64,000 nucleotides of DNA from Macrostomum lignano. Its lineage: Eukaryota. The notes beneath the pieces are model-generated. The model had not been told where the DNA came from and ran no database searches. It saw nothing but the letters and a program-made list of their open reading frames with translations. The DNA lies in the NCBI GenBank assembly GCA_002269645.1, contig NIVC01003067.1, forward strand, positions 9,929 to 73,928, given 5' to 3'. The position numbers were made by a program, and so were the translations under genes. Position 1 is the stretch's first letter; every line of letters starts with the position of its first letter. Shown one piece after another: positions 14,752-54,869 of the stretch.

Positions 14752-16097
14752 ATGGCAGGCGCATATCCATGTGTAGTCTGTCTGCAGCCAGTTTGCGATG
14801 GACAAGAAGCAATTGAGTGTTCTCAATGCTTGAATTGGCAGCACCGTGCATGTGATAGTCGCGTCACAATCGATCAGTATTCTGCAATGAGAAATGTCGG
14901 TGAGTTTTTCTGGCTTTGCAATCAATGCAATAGACGGGCTCCTGCAGGTAACTTAGCAGTGTCTCAAGCTGCAGATGCTGCAGTGGTACATGTACAAGCC
15001 CCGAATTCTGGACCAGCGGCTGTTCCTCTGCCTGCTGAAAATCCAGAACCAGTGCATTTGATTCCAGCACAAGCAGAAAATTTTCTTTACCAGTATCCAG
15101 ATTTCAATGACCCTGATCCAGCTCTGGAAGAATCCATTCAAATTCCTCCAGCAGAGCTTGCACCGCCCCGCAGCCCACCTCCCCAGCCCTTTGAAATTCT
15201 TACAGGTGCAGGATGCAGTCACGGAAAAGACCTTCTAGTGCAGTATGCCCAACGAGACCTTGGCCATCTGATGGATGAAAAAACGCGGCGAAATGGCAAC
15301 ACATACTATCGCTGCACTAAGCGTTTATCACTGCACTGTCATGGCTCCGCAGTCCGCCGTGCTGATGGAACCATAGAAGCCCTTGCTCCGCACACGTGCG
15401 ATCCAGTTGATCGGCCAGCTCAGAAGAGAAAGGCAGCAAAGGAGGTAAAGGAGGGAGCAAAGCGCATGTTGTTTACCTCTGCTAGAATTATCGCGGAGGA
15501 GAAGGTAAGAGAATTTTCACCTGAAGTGCAGGAGGTGCTTAGTATTGAGTCATTGAGTCGCAATGCTAATTACAGTCGCAAAAAAGATCGCCCTATGGAA
15601 CCTGTTGACGTACATTTCCAAGTTGATCCTAGACATGTACCTGCCCAGTTTCATTTGCAGGATGTGACAGTTCCTGAGACAAACGGGCGACACTTCGTCT
15701 TCATGACGACAACTCAGCGAGAACTATTATCAACCCGACGAATCTTGAAGTGCGACGGAACTTTTAGCATTGTCAAGGCACCTTTCAAACAGCTTTACAG
15801 TGTACACGGCGCGATTCGCTTTGATGGGCAGGAAAGGCTGGTACCACTTGCCTTCTTTTTGATGTCCGGTAAGGCTCAAGCTGATTATCAAGCCTGCTTT
15901 CGTTGCCTTTGGGAGTCAACAGGTAATGCGCCAATCAAGTTCACCTGTGACTTTGAAGCTGCTGCTTGGCAAGCAATTCGGCTGGTATATCCAGGTGCGC
16001 AAGTTCGCGGCTGCTTCTTCCATTATTGTCAAGCTGTCTTCAGGCGTGTCCAAAATCTTGGCCTTCAGGTGCAGTATTCCACTGTTCCAGCAGTTCC
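14752..16097 (+). pseudogene. MULE transposase with N-terminal PHD finger and FLYWCH-like zinc finger, C-terminally truncated
   Basis: ATG in caaaATGG context; C4HC3 PHD (CVVC...CSQCLNWQHRAC...CNQC); YYRC...C...HTC; MULE core KCDGTF, LYSVHG, PLAFFLM, TCDFE, GCFFHYCQA. The downstream RTNNxxEGW-type region carrying the third catalytic residue is not found. Confidence 0.9.
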
Positions 16098-16998
16098 AGA
16101 TCATAACGAGTTAAAAAAGCCAAAAAATCCGCACTTACTTATTTGTACTGCACCCATTGCTATAATTTGCTTGAACTTTGTCATCTATCCATGCCACCCG
16201 TACCTTATTGCCATTTCAGATCATAACGAGTTAAAAAAGCCAAAAAATCCGCACTTACTTATTTGTACTGCACCCATTGCTATAATTTGCTTGAACTTTG
16301 TCATCTATCCATGCCACCCGTACCTTATTGCCATTTCAGATCATAACGAGTTAAAAAAGCCAAAAAATCCGCACTTACTTATTTGTACTGCACCCATTGC
16401 TATAATTTGCTTGAACTTTGTCATCTATCCATGCCACCCGTACCTTATTGCCATTTCAGATCATAACGAGTTAAAAAAGCCAAAAAATCCGCACTTACTT
16501 ATTTGTACTGCACCCATTGCTATAATTTGCTTGAACTTTGTCATCTATCCATGCCACCCGTACCTTATTGCCATTTCAGATCATAACGAGTTAAAAAAGC
16601 CAAAAAATCCGCACTTACTTATTTGTACTGCACCCATTGCTATAATTTGCTTGAACTTTGTCATCTATCCATGCCACCCGTACCTTATTGCCATTTCAGA
16701 TCATAACGAGTTAAAAAAGCCAAAAAAATCCGCACTTACTTATTTGTACTGCACCCATTGCTATAATTTGCTTGAACTTTGTCATCTATCCATGCCACCC
16801 GTACCTTATTGCCATTTCAGATCAAAACGAGTTAAAAAAGCCAAAAAAATCCGCACTTACTTATTTGTACTGCACCCATTGCTATAATTTGCTTGAACTT
16901 TGTCATCTATCCATGCCACCCGTACCTTATTGCCATTTCAGATCATAACGAGTTAAAAAAGCCAAAAAAATCCGCACTTACTTATTTGTACTGCACCC
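16097..16998 (+). repeat. 120-bp tandem repeat, about 7.5 near-identical copies
   Basis: Unit starts gatcataacgagttaaaaaagcc at 16099, 16219, 16339, 16459, 16579, 16699, 16820 and 16941. Confidence 0.97.
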
Positions 16999-18029
16999 AA
17001 TATAGCCCTGGAGCATATTTAAGAATCACCGTGCACATTTCTTGCCAGATATTACACTTTGTTTTACGCTCAAATTTGGGATGGGGGGGTTCATTTCGTC
17101 GCACTTACAGAGCAAACAGCCTTTACTTGGGCTAGTCACTGCATGTATGTGTGACTCAGTGCACTTCTGCCTCCGTAATTCATCATCATCCCATCATCCC
17201 CATCATTATGCATGATATTATATGAGCTACGTATACGAGCTATTAAAATGCAGATATGAGATACCTTTTGCACCCAAGTTCGCAGAACAGCTAGGCCTGA
17301 TGAAAGATTTCATAGAAAAACAATTTTTTCATTGCTACAAACTGTTGTCAATACCTTGGTATCTAGAAATAATATGAAATATCGTGAATGGGTGGCAACT
17401 GATACAGTGTTTTTATTTTTGATTTCCACTTCTATTGAGTTCACATATGAGCCGTATTATTTTGTTTAAATTGAATACAAAAGGTAGGCGGGGTTGCTTT
17501 CAATTCAAGCTTGAATGAGCAAAGACTTAATTTATGGTCACGGATCGTTACACTCAAGCCAACCCTAGAGCAACTTTTTTTCAATTGTGGCCTGTACTGA
17601 TACAATATGATTAGAAGTCATAAATAGTCTAAATAACTGACTGGCTTGCGTGGAGATAAAAATCTATCTATATAAAACAGCTCACCTCAAATCAGCCATA
17701 TCGTTATTTTTCGTTGCAATCTTTTTTCAGTTTTAACATTTTTAGCCAACTGCTATGGTTGGTAACCATGATAAAAATTTGGCTTGTAAATAAATAACTC
17801 AATATAGTGACTTTGCATGCAGCACTTAGCATGAAGCCTCAGATTTATTTATGTAAATATCATTTGTACTCTTTATGCACTGCGGCAAATTTGCACAGAT
17901 ATGAGATGCATGTATTTTTCAGCAAGTACTGATACCCAAGAGACGCAAGGCTTCAATCAAAGTCTGACAATTCTGAAATCTCGTCAAATTAAGCCAAACC
18001 TCTAAATACATGTACAGACACAAGTCTGA

Positions 18030-25485: not shown

Positions 25486-31705
<6,220 letters not shown>

Positions 31706-32450: not shown

Positions 32451-32637
32451 TGTTGTGTATGAGTGTGCATATGCATGTGTGTGACACTGAAGCTTGGGCT
32501 ATACTCGTATGAATATTACTGTCTATGGTATAAATACACGTGACGGCCTAGAGAGACGGCCATGCCCTCTGAGCTTTAGTTTCATCAGACCGCGCGCTAT
32601 AGAAGATATAACCCTCTCGGCTTCGCGATATATAACA
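32451..32637 (+). repeat. 5' LTR
   Basis: tgttgtgtat...tataaca; contains a TATAAA motif. Confidence 0.97.
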
Positions 32638-32739
32638 TGGCGTCGCAAGCAGCCAGAGAAGAAGCCCACGAATAAGAAGTCAAGGCTAAGCAAGAGCAAG
32701 ATTGCAGAGCTGCAATTGTTCTGGGGCGTTCCTGTAGAA

Positions 32740-35700
32740 ATGCCTCCAAAGCCGAAAATTGACTTAAAAAGCGCTCCACACTTCGACCTCGAATCTCAGA
32801 AGGCCGTATTCCCACAATGGAAGCAGTTGTGGGAGGCTTTTGAGGAACTATCAGGCCTGAACGACATCGAGCAAGAGGCCGAGAAGAAGAAGTTCCAACT
32901 CTTCGCTTTGCGACACTGCCTGAGTCTGGAGACCCTACGAGTGGTGGACAGCTTACCTCAGCTACTAGGAAAGGATAAAGACGACGCCAAGGAGATCATC
33001 AAGGCCCTGGAAGCATTCATCACCGAGCAGAAGAACGAGATATTCGAGAGGAGGGAATTCTGGCTACGAAATCAAGCAGAAGGTGAGAGCTTCAATGATT
33101 GGTACGTGTCCATCAAAGAAATCTCGTCCAGGTGCAACTTCGAGCGATGCTGTGACGGGTGCGCCGAATACCAGCTCAGAGACAGAATTGTCATGGGACT
33201 TCGCGACCCCAGCACTGTAGAGAAGTTGCTAGAGGAAGGCAGTGAGCTAACGCTGGAGAGAGCAAAGACCATTTGTGAGTCGATGGAGAGTTCGAGGAAA
33301 AACTGCGCCATAATGAAGGGCGAGACACCGACCGTCTCCGCTGTGCGACACGCGTCAAGCTACCGGAAGGCCAAGCGGACTGGAGCAGCGGAGAATCGAC
33401 AGGCAGGAAGACCTGTTCAACAGAGCCGGGCGAAACATCCTGGTCAAGCCTGCAAGTTCTGCGGACGAGAGCACGAGGTCGGCAAAGAGAAATGTCCGGC
33501 CTGGGGGAAGTCGTGCACAAAGTGCGGCAAGCTCAACCATTTCGCTAAGCAGTGCAGAAGTGGACAGTCAGCCAAGCACGGCGAGAGAGTCCACTCAATT
33601 TTCGCCGCAACTGGCGCACAAGGGACCTCAGCATGCTGTGTGGAGGTAAAAATTCGCACCCCTGACGGAACAAAGACCATCGCCGCCTTACCGGACACAG
33701 GCGCTTTCATAGATGCCATCCCTGAGAGCTTGATGCCTATTGTAGGAGCAGATATGAACAACCTACATCCTTCAGACATCAAACCCAAGGCAGTCGACGG
33801 CCGGCTATTAAAAGCCAAGGGCTCGATTCAGCTGCAAGTATCCATGGGTGAAACTGAGCTGCAGCGTACGTTTCACGTCCTCAGCGAAATATCCATCATG
33901 ATTCTATCAAGAGAAGCGTGTCGTGATCTGGGTATCATTCCAAGAAACTTTCCAAAGCAAATCGTGGCAAGCATGAATCAGCACGATACCAACGCTGGCA
34001 CAGAGGAGGACCTAAAAAAAGAGTTTTCGGACGTGTTCACCGGAAAAGTTGGCAGAATGGCTGGTGAGATGTTCAGAATTAAACTATCAGCGGACGCAAA
34101 GCCGTTTGCCATTTCGACCCCGAGAAGAATTGCGGAACCGCTCAAGTTACAGCTCAAGAAGGAACTGGAGGATCTCGAGCGAGATGGGATCATAGCAAAG
34201 GTCACAGAGCCTACGGAATGGTGTGCGCCGATCACCGTGCAGCCAAAGAAAGGCCAGAGCAAGATAAGAATGTGCGTCGACCTACGGTGCTTAAACAAAT
34301 ACGTCATCCGAGAGCGCTACGTCAGCCAAACGCCATTTGAAGTTGTGTCAAGTGTACACAAGGGCGCCAGGTTCTTCACAACCGTTGATGCCACGAAAGG
34401 ATACCACCAAGTGCCACTGGATGACGCGTCACAAATACTGACAACTTTTATCACACCATTCGGACGGTACAAGTTCCTACGTGCCCCCTTTGGACTGTCG
34501 TCCATATCGGAGCATTACAATAGGCGTGTGGATGAAGTGCTAGAGGGACTGAAGAGCACCTATCATATTGTGGACGACGTACTGCTGGCTCACGACGACT
34601 TTGACGAGCATCGCCGTGCTGTTCGTGAGTTTCTGCAGCGATGCAGGGACCGCGGCATCAGCCTGAATCCAGAGAAGTTTGTGTTTGCTCAGCCCAGTGT
34701 GACATTTGCCGGATTCCAGTTGGACTCGAAAGGATACGCTATAGACCCTGCCATAGTGAAGGCGATTCGAGACTTCCCGAAGCCAGAAAATCTGACCGAC
34801 CTCAGAGCGTTCTTCGGACTAGTGAATCAGATTGGGTTCTGTAGTGACAAGATAGCTTCCCTCGGTGAGCCGTTGAGAGAGTTGTTGAAACCGAGGAATG
34901 AGTTCATGTGGAGCTGCGAACACGAAAAAGCATTTGACAGCATGCGGAAAGAACTAAGCAATGTTCCTACAATGGCCTACTATGACCACACGAGGCAGAC
35001 AGCACTGCACACGGATGCGTCTCGACTGAAGGGGCTTGGATTCGTGCTCAAGCAAAAGCAAGACAATGGCATTTGGAAAGTGGTTCAAGCAGGCTCGCGG
35101 TTCATTTCGGAGACAGAGAGGCGATACGCCATGATTGAACTGGAGCTGTTGGCAGTCGTATGGGCGGCAAAGAAATGTCGTCTGTTCCTCGAAGGACTGC
35201 AGAATTTTGAGATAATCATCGACCACAAGCCGTTGGAGCCGATTTTAAATAGATACACCTTGGATCAGATTGAGAATCCGAGGCTTCAGAGGTTGCGACA
35301 GAAACTGGATTGCTTCCAGTACACGGCTCGATGGGTGAAAGGCAGTGACCACAAGGCCGCCGATGCCTTGTCAAGAGCCCCGGTAGAGCCGGCAACCAAA
35401 GACGAAGAACTTGCGGAGGAGCACGAGAGCAACATCATCATGGCTATTGATGAGATTCAAGCTTCTGAAGCAGAGTTGACGCGAATTGCCAGAAGAGACC
35501 AGGAGTACCAGGAGCTGAAGCGATTGGTTCAGCAAGGATTCCCTAACGAGAAGGGAAACGTACCGGTCCATCTAAGACAATTTTGGAACATCCGCGACAA
35601 ACTAGCAGTCGAGCATGACTTGATCGTAGTAGGAAGGCGATTGCTCATTCCCAAGGAGATGCGAGCAGAAGTCCTGAATAGGATGCTCAAGATGCATCAG

Positions 35701-36773
35701 GGAGTCGTTAAGATGAAAGAGAGAGCCAGAATGACTTTCTATTGGCCGGGAATCGACAACGATATAGAAATGTCAGCCAGGAAGTGTATCCCGTGCCAAG
35801 AGACTTTGCCTAGTCAAGTAAAGGAGCCGATGGTTGTGAGAAAGGAACCGGAACGCGTCTTTCAAGAAGTCCATGCCGACTTGTTTCAATTCGCTGGGAA
35901 GATGTTCCTGGTGACTGTGGACGGAAAGTCTGGTTGGCCAACACTAGACTACTTCGGAACTGATGCCTCAACGTACAAGGTGATCAACGTGCTGCGAAGA
36001 CGTTTCTGTGAGAAGGGCGCGCCGGAGGTGTTATGGTCAGACAATGGACCGCAATTCACAGCCAAGCCATTTCTGGGATTCTTGCGTCGTTGGAATGTGG
36101 AGCAGAGGACATCATCCCCACGTACGCGCAGAGCAATGGGCGAGCGGAGGCAGCCGTCAAGGCAATGAAAAAGCTGGTGCGTGGAAATTGGAATCACGGA
36201 GCCAGAGAGCCGAACTGGGACGATCTCTGCCAGGGGATACTGATGTATTGCAACACTCCGCGATACGACGGCAGATCACCAGCACAGATGGTGTTCGGTC
36301 ACGAGGTTCGCGATACCCTGCCAATTCACCGGAGAGCGTTCGCCAAGGAATGGCAAGCAGCAGCAGATGAGGTGGACAACAGGGCAGCGGAGAAGAGGGA
36401 GAGGATGGAGGTGTACTACAATAGAGCAGCTCACCAACTCCCAGCCTTGCGAGTGCGAGACAGAGTTGCAGTGCAGGACGCCCAGACCAAGCGATGGGAC
36501 AAGTACGGCGTGGTGGTCGAGCTAATGAAAAACAACGACTTTCTAGTCAAGCTGACCAGCGGCCGGGTTCTTCGGAGAAACCGAAAGTTCCTACGGAGAA
36601 GGTTTCCAGCACATGCGGCGGAAGCTCGCTACCAGCCCAATACTGGCCCTGCGGACTCGCAAGGTACGAATGGAGCCAGAGGGCCGGAAGGACGATCAAG
36701 ACCGTGGCATACGAGAAACCGTCGGCCACCCAACAGGCTTCAGATTGACCCCCGCAAAAGTTCGTACGACTGA
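32740..36773 (+). CDS. Gag-Pol polyprotein (one frameshift at about 36120)
   Basis: MPPKPK start; zinc knuckles CKFCGREH...CPAWGKSCTKCGKLNHFAKQC; protease LPDTGA; RT (DATKGYHQ, PFGL, IVDD); RNase H (TDAS, ELELLAV, DHKPL); integrase HQG...CIPC, HADLF, SDNGPQF, then in another frame YAQSNGRAEAAVK to the stop. Confidence 0.93.
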
Positions 36774-37829: not shown

Positions 37830-38310
37830 CTGTCTGCAGATTCTGTGGCAACTGTCTGTCTGTACAGATTCTGTGACAAATGTCTGTCTGTGCAGATTCT
37901 GTGGCAACTGTCTCTCTGTACAGATTCTGTGACAAATGTCTGTCTGTGCAGATTCTGTGGCAATTGTCTGTCTGTACAGATTCTGTGGCAACTGTCTGTC
38001 TGTACAGATTCTGTGGCAACTGTCTGTGTGTACAGATTCTGTGGCAACTGTCTGTCTGTGCAGATTCTGTGACAACTGTCTCTCTGTACAGATTCTGTGG
38101 CAACTGTCTGTCTGTACAGATTCTGTGACAAATGTCTGTCTGTACAGATTCTGTGGCAACTGTCTGTCTGTACAGATTCTGTGACAAATGTCTGTCTGTA
38201 CAGATTCTGTGACAAATGTCTGTCTGTAAAGATTCTGTGACAAATGTCTGTCTGTACAGATTCTGTGGAAACTGTCACATTCTGTGGCAACTGTCTGTCT
38301 ACAGATTCTG
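37830..38310. repeat. 28-bp minisatellite (acagattctgtggcaactgtctgtctgt)
   Basis: About 16 tandem copies. Confidence 0.93.
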
Positions 38311-38467: not shown

Positions 38468-38908
38468 TTAGTCGCTGTCGCTGTTGCACAGGCCGGCTCC
38501 CACGGCATGCACCGGTGACAGGCCACACTTGCGAAAGGCGTCCTTGGCGCATGCTAGGCAGCTTCGTTGGGTCTGGCAGGACATCAAGGTGCCCGACAGG
38601 CAGCCCAGCTGCCGGCTGTCGCTTGTCGCAACCGACCGAAAAATTGCCGCAGAAACGGAGCTCAGAGCCGAACCGGCGGATTTGGAGCGGCAGACGGCGG
38701 CAGCGAACTCCGAGACCTGACGGAGGCTGCAGGTGCGGAGGCCACGACTGACGCATTCCAGACAGTCCCTGCCGCCGCTTTGCTGCAGCTTGCAGCCAGT
38801 TAAAACCGGCTTCAGGCAGCCCAGCTGACCAGGCAGATTCGACTGGCTGACGGATGCAGCCAGGGGGAGCCTGGATAGCAGCTGAAGCAGAGCCAGCACT
38901 GCGACCAT
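38468..38908 (-). CDS. Small secreted cysteine-rich protein with two homologous 6-Cys modules (146 aa); family unknown
   Basis: ATG at 38908 to TAA at 38468. Hydrophobic N-terminus MVAVLALLQLLSRLPLAAS; modules QLGC-x7-C-x9-CxxC-x7-C-x12-C and QLGC-x7-C-x5-CxxC-x7-C-x12-C; GC-rich like the other exons in the window. Confidence 0.75.
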   Translation of the reverse strand: MVAVLALLQLLSRLPLAASVSQSNLPGQLGCLKPVLTGCKLQQSGGRDCLECVSRGLRTCSLRQVSEFAAAVCRSKSAGSALSSVSAAIFRSVATSDSRQLGCLSGTLMSCQTQRSCLACAKDAFRKCGLSPVHAVGAGLCNSDSD

Positions 38909-38966
38909 CACTGTTGAAGTGCGGCGACACAGCTGGGATGAGACTGCTGCGGCCGATTGCAGCCGG

Positions 38967-39560
38967 GTGATTCACAAAGACAACTATCCGTAATTCTAGC
39001 AACCATCCGTGATTCACAAAGACAACTATCCGTAATTCTAGCAACCATCCGTGATTCACAAAGACAACTATCCGTAATTCTAGCAACCATCCGTGATTCA
39101 CAAAGACAACTATCCGTAATTCTAGCAACCATCCGTGATTCACAAAAATATCCAAAATTCACACAACCATCCGTGATTCACAAAGACAACTATCCGTAAT
39201 TCTAGCAACCATCCGTGATTCACACAAATATCCAAAATTCACACAACCATCCGTGATTCACACAACTATCCGAAATTCACACAATCATTCATGATTCACA
39301 CAATCATCCGTCATTCACACAACTATCCGAAATTTACACAATCATTCATGATTCACACAATAATTCGTGATTGACACAATTATCCGTGATTCACATCATT
39401 CGTGATTCACACAATCATTCGTGATTCACACAATAATTCGTGCTTCACACAACCATCCATAAAAAACCCAATCATCTATAATTCACACAATCATCCGTAA
39501 TTCACACAATCATCTATAATTCTCACAATCATCCGTAATTCACACAATCATCCGTGATTT
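38967..39560 (+). repeat. 42-bp minisatellite (ccgtgattcacaaagacaactatccgtaattctagcaaccat) grading into shorter variants
   Basis: 4-5 perfect copies, then degenerate gtgattcacacaatcat units. Confidence 0.88.
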
Positions 39561-40088
39561 ACACGATTAATAATCTGCATTTTCTGAAAATCCAAGTGCA
39601 GAATTAAACTCAAAAAGCTTACCCTTCATAGCGTTGCCAACAGTTTCACACATTTCTTGTATTGTTTAATTTGCTCTGCAGAAGTTTTCACTGTAACAAA
39701 ATTAAGAAAGTGAATAATAATCAATAGCTTAGTATCGATCGATGCCTTTCGATTAAGTCAAGAATTGAGTCTTTATCAAAGCACTCCCACATCAGATATT
39801 GTTACGAAAGTTGTAACAATGTTTCTGCAAATTTTACCATAAACTATGGCAAGAAACGAGGTTTCATTAAAAAAGGCTTATAGTTATATTATAGTTAGCA
39901 TAAGCGTGTTGAAACGGACCCACACACTGCAATTGTCTATGGCCGACTTCAATAAATAAAACTCGTTTGCATATAAGTATTTTGTTTGACCCAATTAGTT
40001 AGGCCATTTGACACACTCAGAACCTGACCAGCTGGATCCAAGAAAGAAAAAAAGAAGAAAAGAAAGACGGACGGAGAGGTAGTTAAGG

Positions 40089-44060: not shown

Positions 44061-46636
44061 TTCCGGGCTTCTGCACTATCCGCAAGGACCGTAAAACCGC
44101 CCGCTGCGACCCGAACGTTAAAGGCGGCGGCCTGCTCTTCTTTATCCGGCAAGTCATTCCGTTCAATAAACCCGAGGATGGTCTGGCGGAACCACCGAAG
44201 GCTGCAGAATTTCGATCAGCACCTCGGCCAGACAAAAACTTGTCATCTCCAACATCTGCAGCACAAGCTCAGTGCCTGGTCGACTGGTGCAACTCCGTGG
44301 ACTACCGCATCCTGAACTCAGGGGAACACACTTAAGTTGACAGGCGCACCGGACGGGCTAGTGCTCCCGATCTCACCATCGCTAGTCAATCAGTGGCCGA
44401 CCTCTTTAAATGGCAACCGCTCACCGAGCTCGGCTCCGATCACCAACCCATCCTGGTGATTGTCCCGGAATCCCGTGAAACCCTGAGCACTGCGCCTCGC
44501 TTCAGCTGGTCTTGGAAGAAAGCGAACTGGACTGCTTACCAGACCCTGCTCTCCGAGGACGCCGACCGCCTCAATGGCGGCTCCATTAAGAAACAGATTG
44601 CCAGGCTCTGCTCGGGCATGCTTAAAGCAGCCAAATCTGCTATCCCGCTAAAAAAAGTCTCTGCCAAAAACAAGCCATACTGGGATGAAGAACTTACTGA
44701 ACTTCGCGACACTCGGAACCGGCTTTGGGAATCTGGCGCCCATCCTGGTGAGTGGCTCGAAAAAAGTCACGAACTGTCCAAACTCTGTACCGAAAAGAAA
44801 GCCGAATTCTGGAAGGAGTACATCAATAAAATGTCCGACTCTGCCGACCCAAAACAAGTCTGGAGGACTGTCAAGTGCCTCAGCAACGGCAAACAACAAG
44901 CTCCTCCCAACGAATCTCTCGTTGTTGATGGTCGAGAACTGCGCACGGACAAGGAAAAGGCTAACGCCTTTGGCCGCTATTGCGAAAACATCAGCACTCT
45001 GAAACACTCGGCGGTGGACCGCAAGGTCAAAGTGGCCACGTCCCGTCGCCTGGCCCACTACTCCACCGACGACAACCTTTAATGCCGTGACTTCACCCCT
45101 GGTGAGCTGAAACGGGCCATTGGCAAACTTGACCCAAGCAAAAAATGTGGGCCCGACGAAATCGAAGCTGCCTTCTTCATCCACCTGCCGGACTCTTGGA
45201 TGACGGCCTGGCTGGCCGTCTTCAACCGTTGCTGGCGTACCGGACACTTCCCTGGAGTCTGGAAAAAGGCCGTTATCGTCCCCCTGCTAAAGGACGGAAA
45301 GGACCCCAAAGACCGCGGTAGCTACAGGCCTGTCAGCCTCACCTCCATCTGCGGGAAGATCCTCGAACGGCTTATCCTCGATCGCCTCTTTCGCTGGCTC
45401 GAGCTCCACCACAACATCATTCAGCCCTGCCAAGCCGGTTTTCAACGTAGTCGCGGCTATGAAGAGCAAATCACCCGCCCCGTTCAGTCTATTCAAGATG
45501 AATGGGAGAAACACCCGCACTTGAAAACTGTGGCCGTCCTCATCGACTGCTCTCGCGCCTTCGACCGTGTTTGCGCGCTCGCCTTATTGGTCGCATGATG
45601 GACGAAGGTTCACCAGCTTTCTCGAAGGCAGGCAGATCGCTGTGCGGGTCGGCTCCTCGCTTGGGAAATGGCGCAGACGGAGGGCGCCGTCAGCTCGCCT
45701 GCCCTCTTCCTCATCGATGTTAATAAGTGGTCCGGTCACACCGTGCCTCTCGTTGACTACAGTGGCATTGCAGACGATCTCGCCCTCTGGAGCACGGGCC
45801 GGAACCTCCCGGAAATCCAGGCTCGCCTCCAATCCGCCCTGCAGCTCGTCGAGTAATGGGCCGCTCATCTGCGTATCGACATCAACCCTTCTAAAACTGA
45901 GGGATGCCTCTTCTCTCGTGACAGATCTGACCGTCAACGCAACCTCAGCCTCACCCTCCGGGGCCAACAGATTCCTTTCAAGCAGGAGATTAAGTTTCTC
46001 GGAATCTGGATTGACCAATGTCTGCAATTCGAAAAGCAAACTGACTCCGTCCGGGAAAGAATGCTTCGCAGAGCTGCCATTCTTCGTGCCCTAGCCCACC
46101 GTGAATGGGGCTGGGATCGCAAGCTGCTGCTGCGAGTCTACCGGGCTCTTGTCGAATCCATCGTGTGGCACGCCGCCGCGGCCTGGACGCCCTGGCTATC
46201 TGCGACCCCAGCCCAGCGTGAGGCCCTCCGGGTTGTCACTGGTTTCCCCCGCTCGACACCGGTAGAGGTCATCTACCTCTTGAAAGAGGTACCTCTTGAA
46301 TTTTCTCTTCTATTCTCCCCCCGCTTATTTATTATCAAGAGGAGGCCCTTTAGGACCTCCTAGTCTCGCAGGTCCGCGCCGGGCACTGTCCTGCATCGAT
46401 CTACTACCGCAACCGCACTGGCATTGAGGTCGGGGGCAACTGCCGTCTTTGCGCGGAAGAGGTCGATCGGTACCACCTTCTCAACTGCCCGGCCCTGGAC
46501 GTCCAACGCCGTACTCACGGCATTACCGAAATGTGTCAACTCGCTCGCGCAGACGTAGTGGCGCTTCTCCTTGGGGCCATCGGTTGGTGTCCCCTTTAGG
46601 AGAGGCTCACCGCATACAACAACAACAACAACAACA
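44058..46636 (+). mobile_element. 5'-truncated, decayed non-LTR retrotransposon (I/Jockey group): APE endonuclease, RT, C-terminal CCHC, (CAA)n tail
   Basis: EN motifs RKDR..GGGLLFFIR, NSGEHT, PDLT, LGSDHQPI; RT motifs GPDEI, WKKAVIVPLLK, SYRPVSLTS, QAGF, DCSRAFDRV, IADDLAL, KFLGIWID; CRLC-x7-H-x3-C zinc finger; tail at 46617-46636. Multiple stops, frameshifts and deletions. Confidence 0.92.
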
Positions 46637-49422: not shown

Positions 49423-50673
49423 TCAAGTTGCCACATCAAACTGAACGGTGTGCAGCTTGGGACAGACGCACCGGTGATTATACTGATGCAGGTGGCCCTG
49501 CGGTATCGCCAGCAGCCGATTGTTCAGCATGTCGTACGAGGCCGAGCTGTCGCCGAAGAAGGCTGGCGGCGGCTGCGCCCGCTGAGGACTGCGCTGATTC
49601 CGGCGGGTCTGCGGCATCAGGTGGCGGTGCTGGACGGCCTGCCGATTGACGGCGCGGCTCGGAGCGTAGATGCTGGCCTCGTTGCTCAGGCCGCAGCAGC
49701 ATTTGCAGCATCGGACGCAGGACGTGCACAGACTGGCCACTACTGTCGATCTGGTGGCAAACATAAAGTACAATATAGGATTCAGAACACTGTGCAGCAG
49801 GACCAGCTTCTCCGACACAGTCGGGAACAGGGAGTTGCGCAGAAGTCGGCCGTCCGAGTACACGTGCAGCATCAGGGCGAGAAAGTAGGGCAGCCAGCAC
49901 AATAGGAAGGCGATTACGACACAGAGGCTCATAAATACGGCTTTGATTTTGGCTCGCGACAGCAGCCGACTGCCGCCCCAAGCATTCGATTGCTGCTGTT
50001 GCTGTTGCAGCAAGTGTACTTGATGCTGCGACGGCTGGCTCTGGCTGGAGCCCATCAACAGCTGAGGATGGTAGTCGCAATGGCAGCCCCGTTCGCTGCC
50101 ATCGTTGACGCTCGCACCTCCGCTGCCGCTGCTGCTGCCGCCCCTGCCACAGACGCGGTCGATGCAGATACCTCCGCCTCCGCCTTCGCCGCCGTTGTTG
50201 ACAGCAGGGCAGGAGCCATTCAAGCGGCGTTGAATCTGTGCCGGCATCTTGTTACTGCTCGCTTTCATGTTCCTCCTCAATGGCGCCATCATAATCATCT
50301 GCTGAGTCTGCAACCGGCTCGAGCTGTCCGACCCGACTGTCTCATCCGTGGACTGGACTGGCACTGCGCGAGTTCGCTGCCAGATAGCGTAGACAATCCT
50401 GCCGTAGCAGTAGACCATGGCCAGAGTAGGAAACACAACAACCACCAACAGGACATAGAGCAGGTAGATCTTCCTCTGCCAGGGCTCCGAATAGCCTTCG
50501 CTCTCGCACCGAGTCAGTGTGTAGTTGCCGGTCGCAGTAACTTGCACAACCGTGGTTTGCTTGAAAATGAACAGCTGCGGCGTCGCAAACACCAGGGCGC
50601 AGAGCCAGCAGGCCAGGATTCGGCGGGCCACGCGGGAATCGCGGTGGAACGCGCGGAGAGGCTTCACTAATAC
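49423..50673 (-). CDS. Class A neuropeptide GPCR, last coding exon (ICL2 to C-terminus)
   Basis: Acceptor ccctaattcAG, phase 0. VLVKPL; TM4 ILACWLCALVFATPQLFIF; ECL2 RCESEGYSEPWQRKIY; TM5 ...FPTLAMVYCYGRI; long low-complexity ICL3; TM6 AKIKAVFMSLCVVIAFLLCWLPYF; TM7 LHSVLNPILY; 1251 bp to the stop. Confidence 0.92.
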   Translation of the reverse strand, partial: VLVKPLRAFHRDSRVARRILACWLCALVFATPQLFIFKQTTVVQVTATGNYTLTRCESEGYSEPWQRKIYLLYVLLVVVVFPTLAMVYCYGRIVYAIWQRTRAVPVQSTDETVGSDSSSRLQTQQMIMMAPLRRNMKASSNKMPAQIQRRLNGSCPAVNNGGEGGGGGICIDRVCGRGGSSSGSGGASVNDGSERGCHCDYHPQLLMGSSQSQPSQHQVHLLQQQQQQSNAWGGSRLLSRAKIKAVFMSLCVVIAFLLCWLPYFLALMLHVYSDGRLLRNSLFPTVSEKLVLLHSVLNPILYFMFATRSTVVASLCTSCVRCCKCCCGLSNEASIYAPSRAVNRQAVQHRHLMPQTRRNQRSPQRAQPPPAFFGDSSASYDMLNNRLLAIPQGHLHQYNHRCVCPKLHTVQFDVAT

Positions 50674-50997
50674 CTGAATTAGGGTTGGAATTAGGGATGC
50701 GACCATGTTCAAATGCAAGGCTTCAGATCTATCTAACCGAATAACTTTTGTAGGGCGCAAGGTCTGACAGAATTCAAGCAGTCAGAGCTCGCAAATCACA
50801 AAGCTAATTGGAATGCCCGAGACAGCAACGAGCTAAGTTGGGTGAGCCAACAACATGGAATAGGGTCTGGGAGGTGTGTTGCGAGCATTGATCTTCCATG
50901 TGTCTGTCGCTTTGCCACATCGAACAACCGCGCCGATGAAGTCTGGGTTTCCCACAAAGCCACGAATTCTTTTCCATGCTGCCAACCCAGTTAATTT

Positions 50998-52395
50998 AGT
51001 GTGCTGCCACCACATATTCAGTGTGCTGCCACCACATATTCAGTGTGCTGCCACCACATATTCAGTGTGCTGCCACCACATATTCAGTGTGCTGCCACCA
51101 CATATTCAGTGTGCTGCCACCACATATTCAGTGTGCTGCCACCACATATTCAGTGTGCTGCCACCACATATTCAGTGTGCTGCCACCACATATTCAGTGT
51201 GCTGCCACCACATATTCAGTGTGCTGCCACCACATATTCAGTGTGCTGCCACCACATATTCAGTGTGCTGCCACCCCATATTCAGTGTGCTGCCACCACA
51301 TATTCAGTGTGCTGCCACCACATATTCAGTGTGCTGCCACCACATATTCAGTGTGCTGCCACCCCATACTCAGTGTGCTGCCACCCCATACTCAGTGTCT
51401 GCCACCTCATATTCAGTGTGCTGCCACCACATATTCAGTGTGCTGCCACCACATATTCAGTGTCTGCCACCTCATATTCAGTGTACTGCCACCACATATT
51501 CAGTGTGCTGCCACCCCATATTCAGTGTGCTGCCACCACATATTCAGTGTGCTGCCACCCCATATTCAGTGTGCTGCCACCCCATACTCAGTGTGCTGCC
51601 ACCACATATTCAGTGTGCTGCCACCCCATATTCAGTGTGCTGCCACCACATATTCAGTGTGCTGCCACCCCATACTCAGTGTGCTGCCACCACATATTCA
51701 GTGTCTGCCACTCCATACTCAGTGTGCTGCCACCACATATTCAGTGTGCTGCCACCACATATTCAGTGTGCTGCCACCACATATTCAGTGTGCTGCCACC
51801 ACATATTCAGTGTGCTGCCACCACATATTCAGTGTGCTGCCACCCCATATTCAGTGTGCTGCCACCACATATTCAGTGTGCTGCCACCACATATTCAGTG
51901 TGCTGCCACCACATATTCAGTGTGCTGCCACCCCATACTCAGTGTGCTGCCACCCCATACTCAGTGTCTGCCACCTCATATTCAGTGTGCTGCCACCAAA
52001 TATTCAGTGTGCTGCCACCACATATTCAGTGTCTGCCACCTCATATTCAGTGTACTGCCACCACATATTCAGTGTGCTGCCACCCCATATTCAGTGTGCT
52101 GCCACCACATATTCAGTGTGCTGCCACCCCATATTCAGTGTGCTGCCACCCCATACTCAGTGTGCTGCCACCACATATTCAGTGTGCTGCCACCCCATAT
52201 TCAGTGTGCTGCCACCACATATTCAGTGTGCTGCCACCCCATATTCAGTGTGCTGCCACCCCATACTCAGTGTGCTGCCACCCCATATTCAGTGTCTGCC
52301 ACTCCATACTCAGTGTGCTGCCACCACATATTCAGTGTGCTGCCACCCCATACTCAGTGTGCTGCCACCACATATTCAGTGTCTGCCACTCCATA
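50998..52395. repeat. 22-bp minisatellite (gtgtgctgccaccacatattca) in the GPCR intron, about 64 copies
   Basis: Direct tandem units; they explain three long repetitive ORFs. Confidence 0.97.
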
Positions 52396-53171
52396 TCCAT
52401 ATACTAACAATGAGTTGTTCAGTGTGCTGAAATCAAACTCTAGCTTATCTTAGAGTAACCAAACTGCTATAATGCAGTCAAATCCTTATAAAAATACCTG
52501 AAATTCGATAACTAAGAGTGCATCTGTGACACCTGACACATCATTATCAAAATTTCAGATGATAGGCTTCATGGGTCTTCCAAGGCATTTGGCCGAGTGG
52601 AAGCTTTTGTATGTATTTTTGGCTTCAATTCACCTTTATCACGCATTTTCTAGCCTTGGTTTCAAAATTCATGCGTGACTTGCCCTTATTTTTGTGCAAT
52701 AGCAGTGACTTGGCCTTGACAGGTTTAGAACAGGCACCTATTTGACCAGTTGTCAATGTGAAAAATAGCTGGTACAAGCGGTTGGGTCAGCGCTTTTAAC
52801 GCATAAAACGCTTGCCTCTGAGCACCCCCCGATGCGCACTTATACGAGCTATAAATAATTGAGCAACACATGACGACATGCAGACTGTCATACTCTGGAC
52901 CCTGGGATTAACTCCATTCATTCCCACCCGACATCGATCAAGGCTTTCCCATCCAGGATTTAAACTAATAATGCTTCGCTCCAATATTACTCAGAATAGT
53001 TCCCCTCAAGCCGTCAGGCGCGGCTCCTCTTCCGAACGTCCTCATAACTCTCCGCCTCCTGTCTAATCAGGCGGAAAACTTTTTACCCAAATGGTTGCGA
53101 TGGACTGCTAACTTCTACGGTGAAATATATGGCACCGCGATACTTTTCACAAAGATGCTCTGGAAAGTTGT

Positions 53172-53688: not shown

Positions 53689-53843
53689 AGCACCAGCTCA
53701 CCTCGTATCTGTCAACAGTCATCACCAGCACCAGCTCACCTCGTATCTGTCATCAGTCATCGCCAGCACCAGCTCACCTCGTATCTGTCATCAGTCATCG
53801 CCAGCACCAGCTCACCTCGTATCTGTCAACAGTCATCGCCAGC
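53689..53843 (-). repeat. 38-bp tandem repeat spanning the GPCR exon end and splice donor (4 copies)
   Basis: ctcac (minus-strand GTGAG) at 53697, 53735, 53773 and 53811, each followed by ctcgtatctgtca. Confidence 0.95.
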
Positions 53844-54224
53844 AGCAGGAAGGCCGTGGAGGCCAGGCAGACGAACTGCACGTAGACAACCAGTTTGCAC
53901 ATGACGGGGCCGAGCTCCCACTGGCCGAAGGCGATGAAGAGCAGCTCTCCTGAGCACACAACTGCACCAACGCAGATGTCGCCGACAGCCAAGTTGATGA
54001 GGAAGAAGTTGATGCGCATAATTTTGCCAACAAGCCTCCAGGTCTGGCGAATGTAGACAATTAGGCGCAAATTACCAGCAATGGCCAGCACCATTGTGAG
54101 GCAGAGCACCACCAGGGAGGCCACGTCCTCAGCGGACATGATTCGAACTTCCCCGTGGCTTGTTGAAGTTGTCAAGTCGAAATAGTTTGTGTCATTGAGC
54201 TGCTCCGTGAGCGCGGAACTGGAC
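53816..54224 (-). CDS. Class A neuropeptide GPCR, exon encoding TM1-TM3 (vasopressin/GnRH/CCAP superfamily)
   Basis: TM1 ..VLAIAGN; TM2 INFFLINLAVGDICVG; WELGPVMCK; TM3 ..LLAMTVDRYE, then donor GTGAGC (phase 0), joining VLVKPL. The 5' boundary is uncertain: candidate acceptor at plus 54225-54226, or an ATG at 54139. Confidence 0.88.
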
Positions 54225-54869
54225 CTGGGGGTGTTGCATAAAGGCGTGTATGATGGTGGAGTGCGCAAAGCGAAAGTATTCCGGGTATTCCGGGAAATCG
54301 ATAAATGATGGAAAGGTTAAAAAAACGTTGCCCAGTGAACTTTGCATACTTGCCAGATAAAACTTGATGCAGAAAAGTCTTTTCTTAAAGAGCTGCTTTT
54401 ATTCTTCAAAATGAAAACAGTTGATTGACAAAGTCCTCCTTTCTTAACTCAACACAGCCTTCACGATGCCTTATGGAGTTTTACCTCGAAAAAATCATTG
54501 GACTTCTTTTATTGCACTTGACTTTGCTACTTTCTATAGCCCTTGCGAATCTTACGAGTACTTGCGACTATTCTCTATACATGTAGCTATACGCTTGTGA
54601 CATGACAGATTCAAAAGTACCACGTGGGGGATGACGATTGATTTTGTCTGGCCAAGTAACCGAATTAAGTCTGCTGGAGAAGAAGCTGCTCCACGGTCTG
54701 CGCAGCCACTGGCCATCCATGGGAAAGGCCGAGTGCTTGGCCAAACTTCAAATTGTCCACCGAATTTGCATTCTGCCAGTTTAACCCGGGGTTCCGCTGA
54801 AGCCCGGCGTCCCCTGAGACTTGAATTGATCAACCAATCATTCATGATACAGTTTCTCACGCACTTCAG

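Follow-up and report, generated by a model that had tools for sequence, protein, structure and literature searches.

An orphan two-exon gene of Macrostomum lignano encoding a predicted secreted protein with two homologous six-cysteine modules

The locus and its gene model

The window analyzed here, i.e. the whole 64-kb stretch of contig NIVC01003067.1, carries on its minus strand an open reading frame of 146 amino acids, with an ATG at 38908 and a TAA stop at 38470-38468. A first reading made from the letters of the DNA (referred to below as the sequence-only reading) had described it as a clean single-exon ORF. The frame itself is real, but in the GenBank model it is part of a gene with two exons. 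Its GenBank counterpart is the hypothetical protein BOX15_Mlig010537g1 of Macrostomum lignano, a 157-aa protein that matches the entire ORF at 100% identity and possesses 11 additional N-terminal residues. The gene spans 1186 bp (window 38468-39653), and joining exon 1 to exon 2 generated the 157-aa GenBank protein with an exact match. From 5' to 3' on the minus strand, the locus comprises:

39654-39691, minus strand: presumed short 5' UTR; the sequence in front of it, ...TTTTGTTACAG, is a candidate spliced-leader trans-splice acceptor
39653-39623, minus strand: coding exon 1, ATGTGTGAAACTGTTGGCAACGCTATGAAGG, encoding MCETVGNAMK plus the first base of Val11 and corresponding to the n-region of the signal peptide (GenBank model and direct reading)
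39622-38911, minus strand: intron 1, 712 nt, phase 1, GTAAGC...CTTCAACAG
38967-39564, within intron 1 of BOX15_Mlig010537g1: minisatellite arrays with units of 38/42 bp
38910-38468, minus strand: coding exon 2, containing the whole 146-aa ORF including its TAA stop (38470-38468)
37830-38276, no strand assigned: minisatellite of 28 bp x 16, about 190 bp 3' of the stop codon, outside the CDS and located in the 3' flanking DNA or perhaps in the 3' UTR

The boundaries of intron 1 are canonical (GT-AG), and the exon-1 ATG is found in a Kozak-like context with an A at position -3 and an in-frame TAA 15 nt upstream. The TTTTGTTACAG stretch in front of the putative 5' UTR may represent a spliced-leader trans-splice acceptor; in M. 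lignano, 38.8% of genes are trans-spliced (PMC5730564). On the other side of the gene, no AATAAA was read between the stop codon and the 28-bp array. The ORF had been described as lying between two minisatellites, and both arrays do exist, but the two-exon gene model makes the upstream one intronic. The frame had also been called unrecognised, which holds with respect to known families, none of which it matches, but not with respect to GenBank, where the gene is already deposited as a hypothetical protein. BOX15_Mlig010537g1 has been annotated before and never characterised. A full-text literature search did not find the gene ID Mlig010537, nor did it occur in the supplement texts of the M. 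lignano papers searched, which may be incomplete or use other IDs.

The surroundings of the gene are extremely rich in mini- and microsatellites, with 70 TRF rows for the window. About 1.7 kb past the 3' end of BOX15_Mlig010537g1 lies the pol region of a Ty3/gypsy-type LTR retrotransposon (32494-36773, plus strand), whose RVT_1, RNase H, Integrase_H2C2 and rve domains are encoded by a 1224-aa ORF followed by an overlapping ORF of 246 aa. This pol region is missing from the sister contig NIVC01001199.1 (98.8-99.8% identity elsewhere), in which window position 32637 joins 36809, and the element is a recent insertion that differs between duplicated or haplotypic copies. A rhodopsin-family GPCR is encoded on the same strand as BOX15_Mlig010537g1, about 10 kb away, by two exons (49423-50760 and 53795-54268, minus strand) matching positions 1-84 and 86-260 of the 7tm_1 profile; within its intron of about 3 kb there are a minisatellite of 22 bp x 64 (50994-52396) and an (ATAG)n array, and Gln, Gly and Ser abound in its long third intracellular loop. 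An ORF combining a PHD-like finger with a MULE transposase domain (14752-16999, plus strand), which belongs to a domesticated or decaying Mutator-like element, continues without a break into a tandem repeat (16097-16999; 120 bp x 7.5, 99% identity) and thereby encodes repeated 40-residue units. Fragmented reverse-transcriptase ORFs of the non-LTR (LINE-like) type (44393-46094, plus strand), in which only the first part of RVT_1 was matched, probably derive from a dead element. Finally, a region with GC-rich stretches (up to 60% GC; 26177-31500, plus strand) contains charged coiled-coil-like ORFs, e.g. 26375-26830 and 30849-31495, devoid of Pfam hits; these ORFs are broken by minisatellites and a (CTA)79 array (30972-31209), are 95-99% conserved in the sister contig, and probably correspond to a multi-exon gene.

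The coding nature of the frame was assessed from its annotation and its composition. GenBank models of the Mlig_3_7 assembly (GCA_002269645.1) were derived only from RNA-seq assemblies (StringTie/TACO and de novo), with transcript boundaries defined by TBONE and ORFs by TransDecoder (PMC5730564), so that a spliced BOX15_Mlig010537g1 transcript is implied. The same annotation leaves out transcripts overlapping repeat annotations (PMC5730564), and no TE domain was found in the protein; its identity as a transposon protein was rejected on both grounds. The GC content of the ORF is 63%, versus 39% in the 168 bp directly 3' of the stop codon. GC3 reaches 0.74 in the frame of the ORF, versus third-position values of 0.57-0.61 in the two shifted frames, and is 0.73 in the neighbouring GPCR exon; using a codon-usage log-likelihood trained on this exon, the frame of the ORF scored best of six. 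The length of the ORF is by itself weak evidence of coding, as a run of 147 codons with the local GC content would stay open with a probability of about 0.024. Window 28468-49653 matched NIVC01003067.1 of this assembly at 100% identity. The sister contig carries the same locus at 99.8% identity with zero differences anywhere in BOX15_Mlig010537g1, and the dN/dS comparison of the two assembly copies is therefore uninformative with regard to selection.

Predicted signal peptide, cysteine modules and linker

The 157-aa precursor is organized as follows, exon 1 contributing the n-region listed above:

38852-38910, minus strand: exon-2 part of the predicted signal peptide, (V)MVAVLALLQLLSRLPLAAS, with a 12-residue hydrophobic core, Ala at -3, Ser at -1 and a predicted cut at AAS↓VSQ
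38690-38827, minus strand: module 1, QLGCLKPVLTGCKLQQSGGRDCLECVSRGLRTCSLRQVSEFAAAVC, six Cys, QLGC-x7-C-x9-CxxC-x7-C-x12-C
38612-38689, minus strand: linker, RSKSAGSALSSVSAAIFRSVATSDSR, 26 residues, Ser/Ala-rich, net charge about +3
38486-38611, minus strand: module 2, QLGCLSGTLMSCQTQRSCLACAKDAFRKCGLSPVHAVGAGLC, six Cys, QLGC-x7-C-x5-CxxC-x7-C-x12-C
38471-38485, minus strand: acidic tail NSDSD, after module 2

By inspection, the N-terminus of the precursor (MCETVGNAMK-VMVAVLALLQLL-SRLPLAAS↓VSQ) reads as a textbook signal peptide, in agreement with the signal-peptide-like start noticed earlier on the shorter ORF: the charged n-region includes Lys10, residues 11-22 form the hydrophobic core and AAS↓V fits the -3/-1 rule. 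In a Kyte-Doolittle plot with a 9-residue window, hydropathy peaked at 3.28 over residues 11-19, which constitute the sole strongly hydrophobic segment of the protein. The predicted mature protein would comprise about 127 residues, with a computed mass of 13.0 kDa, a pI of 8.9 and a net charge of about +7, whereas module 2 alone is nearly neutral (+0.8). A sequence scan of this mature form detected neither an N-glycosylation sequon nor a C-terminal retention or anchor signal.

Direct reading reproduced the reported count of 12 Cys, distributed over two QLGC modules with the spacing C-x7-C-x(9/5)-CxxC-x7-C-x12-C. The full 157-aa product possesses a 13th Cys at residue 2, which lies inside the predicted signal peptide and leaves an even set of 12 in the mature part. 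Each module starts with QLGCL, and the alignment of the two shows 39% identity and needs a single gap of 4 residues. Their BLOSUM62 local score of 83 was higher than the maxima reached by 2000 full shuffles (56) and by 2000 shuffles in which the Cys positions were kept fixed (63). The similarity between the modules thus exceeds their shared Cys pattern, and the proposal that they are homologous was borne out. Synonymous divergence between module 1 and module 2 is saturated (dS about 1.25, for a dN of about 0.69), yet the six Cys (6/6), their spacing and QLGCL are kept, the mark of prolonged constraint on the protein. In a six-frame translation, the only other occurrences of the Cys pattern in the 64 kb came from translated microsatellites rich in Cys.

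The first five codons of the two modules (CAG CTG GGC TGC CTG, QLGCL; 38813-38827 and 38597-38611, minus strand) are identical at 15/15 nucleotides. All of these codons are presumably the preferred GC-ending ones in a GC3-rich genome, so that the identity may be due to chance; local gene conversion or a constraint at the nucleotide level could conceivably account for it as well.

The two modules are separated by a 26-residue spacer (38612-38689) that is indeed Ser/Ala-rich, as described before. The proposal that the protein is a proprotein releasing two peptides fared less well. The precursor contains zero KR, RR or KK and only a single RK (residues 137-138) and a single RxxR (residues 66-69), both of them inside the disulfide modules, and a sequence scan of the linker and of the stretch before module 1 found neither dibasic nor RxxR sites. 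With respect to the features of neuropeptide precursors, the sequence offers the N-terminal signal peptide but not the dibasic or furin-type sites flanking the units, and a Gly-basic amidation signal is absent from the precursor. The SR↓QLGC sequence before module 2 is a possible monobasic cleavage site. Monobasic convertase sites usually need a basic residue at P4, P6 or P8; relative to this cut the second Arg of the region (Arg102) is at P9. As for module 1, which had been credited with a pyroglutamate N-terminus, the predicted cut AAS↓VSQ leaves VSQSNLPG in front of QLGC and no basic residue precedes the Gln, so that such a start would need an unknown protease. A tether lacking a convertase site favours, as a working model, secretion of an intact two-domain protein rather than of a prohormone.

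The AF2 model of the whole precursor was poor (pLDDT 49) and all-helical; with low confidence, it placed three helices in module 1 (residues 44-49, 57-69 and 73-84). When a 51-residue construct of module 2 was modelled with module 1 as the sole aligned sequence, the mean pLDDT rose to 75 and three helices were predicted (H2-16, H22-32 and H39-46), the CxxC being located at the N-terminus of helix 2. For module 2 at least, this prediction agrees with the helical nature that had been attributed to the modules. Given the invariant Cys and the presumed passage through the secretory route, each module would be expected to form three disulfides.

Searches for relatives and comparison with known peptides

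Pfam hmmscan with the whole protein and with each module recovered 0 families at E<=10. CHH/ITP (Crust_neurohorm), insulin, saposin, macin, defensin, Kunitz, ShK and transposon proteins were thus all unmatched at this threshold; the sequence-only reading had already stated that the spacing does not fit several of these, namely the defensins, macins, saposins, CHH, Kunitz and ShK patterns. No PDB sequence was hit at E<=10, either by phmmer with the protein or by hmmsearch with a two-module profile. At the structural level, a Foldseek search of the PDB with the module model (pLDDT 75) found no match, the best E value being 3.6 and the fragments recovered being generic unrelated helical ones. A word-indexed search of 5.8 billion proteins returned BOX15_Mlig010537g1 itself only, and its module-alignment version returned none. 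Scanning the JGI metagenomes with the module patterns gave 69 pattern stretches, 0 of which were confirmed by tblastn. An exact-sequence look-up of the 146- and 147-aa versions of the ORF found no record, and an Rfam scan of the window found no match.

An exhaustive phmmer search of 1.84 billion representatives recovered BOX15_Mlig010537g1 itself and a single other protein, at an E value of 4e-6. The latter is a 398-aa protein annotated on a satellite in the chromosome assembly of another species (P0002; GCA_026914265.1, CP111026.1; L003 1-4342). It was rejected as a homologue: the ORF runs through a 53-bp x 82 satellite array, and the score of its match to module 2 is the sum of seven repeats of a weak 25-residue match in which only the CxxC is kept. 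The repeated CSTCRTSRSRKTGPLPVHAAPVG unit is responsible for the misleading E value, an example of a HMMER score inflated by repeats.

The protein cluster of BOX15_Mlig010537g1 is made of two GenBank contigs only. Together with the empty exact look-ups, this indicates that RNA-seq and genome data from other Macrostomum are evidently outside the collections searched. The sequence-only reading had held that its proposal would fall if no homologue preserved the Cys spacing. None was found, a result that formally goes against the proposal but carries little weight, as the collections evidently do not include other Macrostomum genomes or transcriptomes. Within these collections BOX15_Mlig010537g1 is an orphan, and congeneric orthologues may well exist.

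The modules were compared with two small helical peptides that had been cited as analogies. Er-1 is a ciliate protein with three disulfides and a single module per precursor. Er-1 of Euplotes raikovi (1ERC/2ERL) resembles the modules in that it is secreted, is about 40 residues long and carries six Cys; it has three helices, the number that AF2 predicts (pLDDT 75) for module 2. However, its Cys spacing (x6, x4, x3, x8, x7) differs from that of the modules (x7, x9/5, x2, x7, x12), and the single ciliate module contrasts with the tandem two-module protein of M. lignano. Using an Er-1 sequence verified against 1ERC, hhalign gave a probability of 0.15% and an E value of 0.4 over 3 aligned columns, and Er-1 was absent from the Foldseek PDB matches of the module model at E<=10. 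Aplysia attractin (1T50), from another lophotrochozoan/spiralian, is likewise a small secreted helical water-borne peptide with six Cys. Its spacing (x8, x6, x5, x6, x7) again differs from that of the modules; it is a single 58-residue peptide, in contrast to two modules in tandem, and no IEECKTS-like motif was found in the M. lignano protein. The hhalign probability with attractin, verified against 1T50, was 0.2%. Lacking sequence or profile similarity and differing in Cys spacing, Er-1 and attractin were both rejected as kin.

Classical neuropeptide and prohormone precursors share with BOX15_Mlig010537g1 the succession of a signal peptide and homologous units with a spacer between them. They differ from it in that their units are short linear peptides with dibasic flanks and Gly amidation, whereas the units found here are large disulfide domains with neither signal. 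A further likeness is that to the prostate-limited putative seminal fluid proteins Mlig-pro1-76 of the same species. BOX15_Mlig010537g1 is short, with a predicted signal peptide and no BLAST or Pfam homologue, and such a profile is frequent among them: 31/76 transcripts were without a BLAST hit and signal peptides were present in 38 of the 65 with an identified ORF (PMC5977470). The ID BOX15_Mlig010537g1 was not found in the supplement texts of this study (Weber et al. 2018; PMC5977470), and the resemblance, drawn by analogy, is one of type only. BOX15_Mlig010537g1 has the features by which lineage-restricted secreted cysteine-rich proteins are described, namely a predicted signal peptide, an even and regular set of Cys and no homologue found outside; it is a new cysteine framework within this familiar class.

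A probable secreted two-domain protein and its alternatives

The best explanation of these data is that BOX15_Mlig010537g1 is a genuine, transcribed, lineage-restricted two-exon gene of Macrostomum lignano, and we consider it probable, with some reserve, that its product is a real protein secreted as an intact two-domain molecule. Judging from its sequence, the 157-aa precursor would enter the ER via a classical N-terminal signal peptide, be cleaved at about Ser30 and be exported as an intact basic protein of about 127 aa and 13 kDa (computed pI about 8.9, charge about +7). The latter would consist of two modules, paralogous and some 45 residues long, each predicted to form a three-helix unit and expected to contain three disulfides, joined by the flexible 26-residue Ser/Ala-rich tether. 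In this view, the modules descend from an old tandem duplication inside the gene, spanning about 216 bp. Such a molecule might act as a bivalent extracellular binding component, or as a structural one, of a glandular or epithelial secretion. This role is suggested by type, orphan signal-peptide proteins of M. lignano being typical of gland secretions, e.g. seminal fluid, and we are far less confident about any one tissue than about the secretion of an intact two-domain protein.

A different fate of the same precursor would be that of a prohormone or pheromone precursor, in which convertase cuts at single Arg residues (CR↓SK, FR↓S and SR↓QLGC) would release a pair of helical peptides, each locked by disulfides and about 45 residues long, with pyroglutamate on module 2, acting as a pheromone, a hormone or a mating effector. 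The signal peptide, the two equal modules with a non-conserved spacer, and the Arg immediately before the QLGC of module 2 are all in line with this proposal, for which the three-helix six-Cys pheromones Er-1 (PDB 1ERC) and attractin (PDB 1T50) would be precedents; the rhodopsin-type GPCR gene about 10 kb away may be added, although its proximity is probably coincidental. However, the linker shows neither dibasic nor RxxR sites, Arg102 occupies P9 of SR↓Q instead of P4, P6 or P8, module 1 is preceded by PG and not by a basic residue, the amidation motif is absent, and neither Er-1 nor attractin shows sequence or profile similarity to the modules. We regard a prohormone as unlikely. A role as a host-defence or toxin-like effector appears more improbable still, i.e. 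that of a cationic disulfide-stabilised helical protein that would bind and perturb microbial or prey membranes in the manner of saposin-like or helical antimicrobial proteins. Effectors of innate immunity and of venoms are typically secreted, orphan and Cys-rich, and the protein fits this profile, with helices predicted in its modules, a net charge of about +7 and a pI of 8.9; against this proposal, no saposin, macin, defensin or other Pfam family was matched even at E<=10, and the charge of module 2 alone (+0.8) is close to neutral.

The question of whether the ORF is functional at all was considered in the same way. A chance or decaying frame, located in a GC-rich transcribed island between satellites and picked by TransDecoder, would be compatible with the repeat-packed region, with the long ORFs that overlap in other frames, with the zero homologues in the databases searched, and with the fact that 147 open codons are expected by chance at about 2.4% per start. 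It would not readily explain a signal peptide combined with 12 regular Cys and an internal repeat in which the Cys and QLGCL have outlasted saturated synonymous divergence, nor frame-specific GC3 and codon usage, nor a canonical spliced 5' exon that brings both the start codon and the charged n-region. Among the explanations considered, we hold this one to be the least probable. Returning to the secreted two-domain protein, a bolder proposal, in our opinion rather doubtful, is that the QLGC unit of about 45 residues is the founder of an undescribed family of disulfide-rich three-helix domains found only in macrostomids, and that the protein, intact or cut at SR↓Q, is a secreted signalling or mate-manipulating effector, e.g. 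a pheromone or a seminal-fluid factor.

Similar orphans are plentiful in invertebrate genomes, and BOX15_Mlig010537g1 is to be taken as a candidate and not as a discovery. If real and functional, it would extend the range of secreted mini-proteins by a Cys framework and a small helical disulfide fold, both of them new. M. lignano is routinely used for transgenesis, RNAi and in situ screens, which makes the role of the protein directly testable. Orphan secreted proteins of this kind are the raw material of the fast-evolving reproductive, adhesive and defence secretions of Macrostomum.
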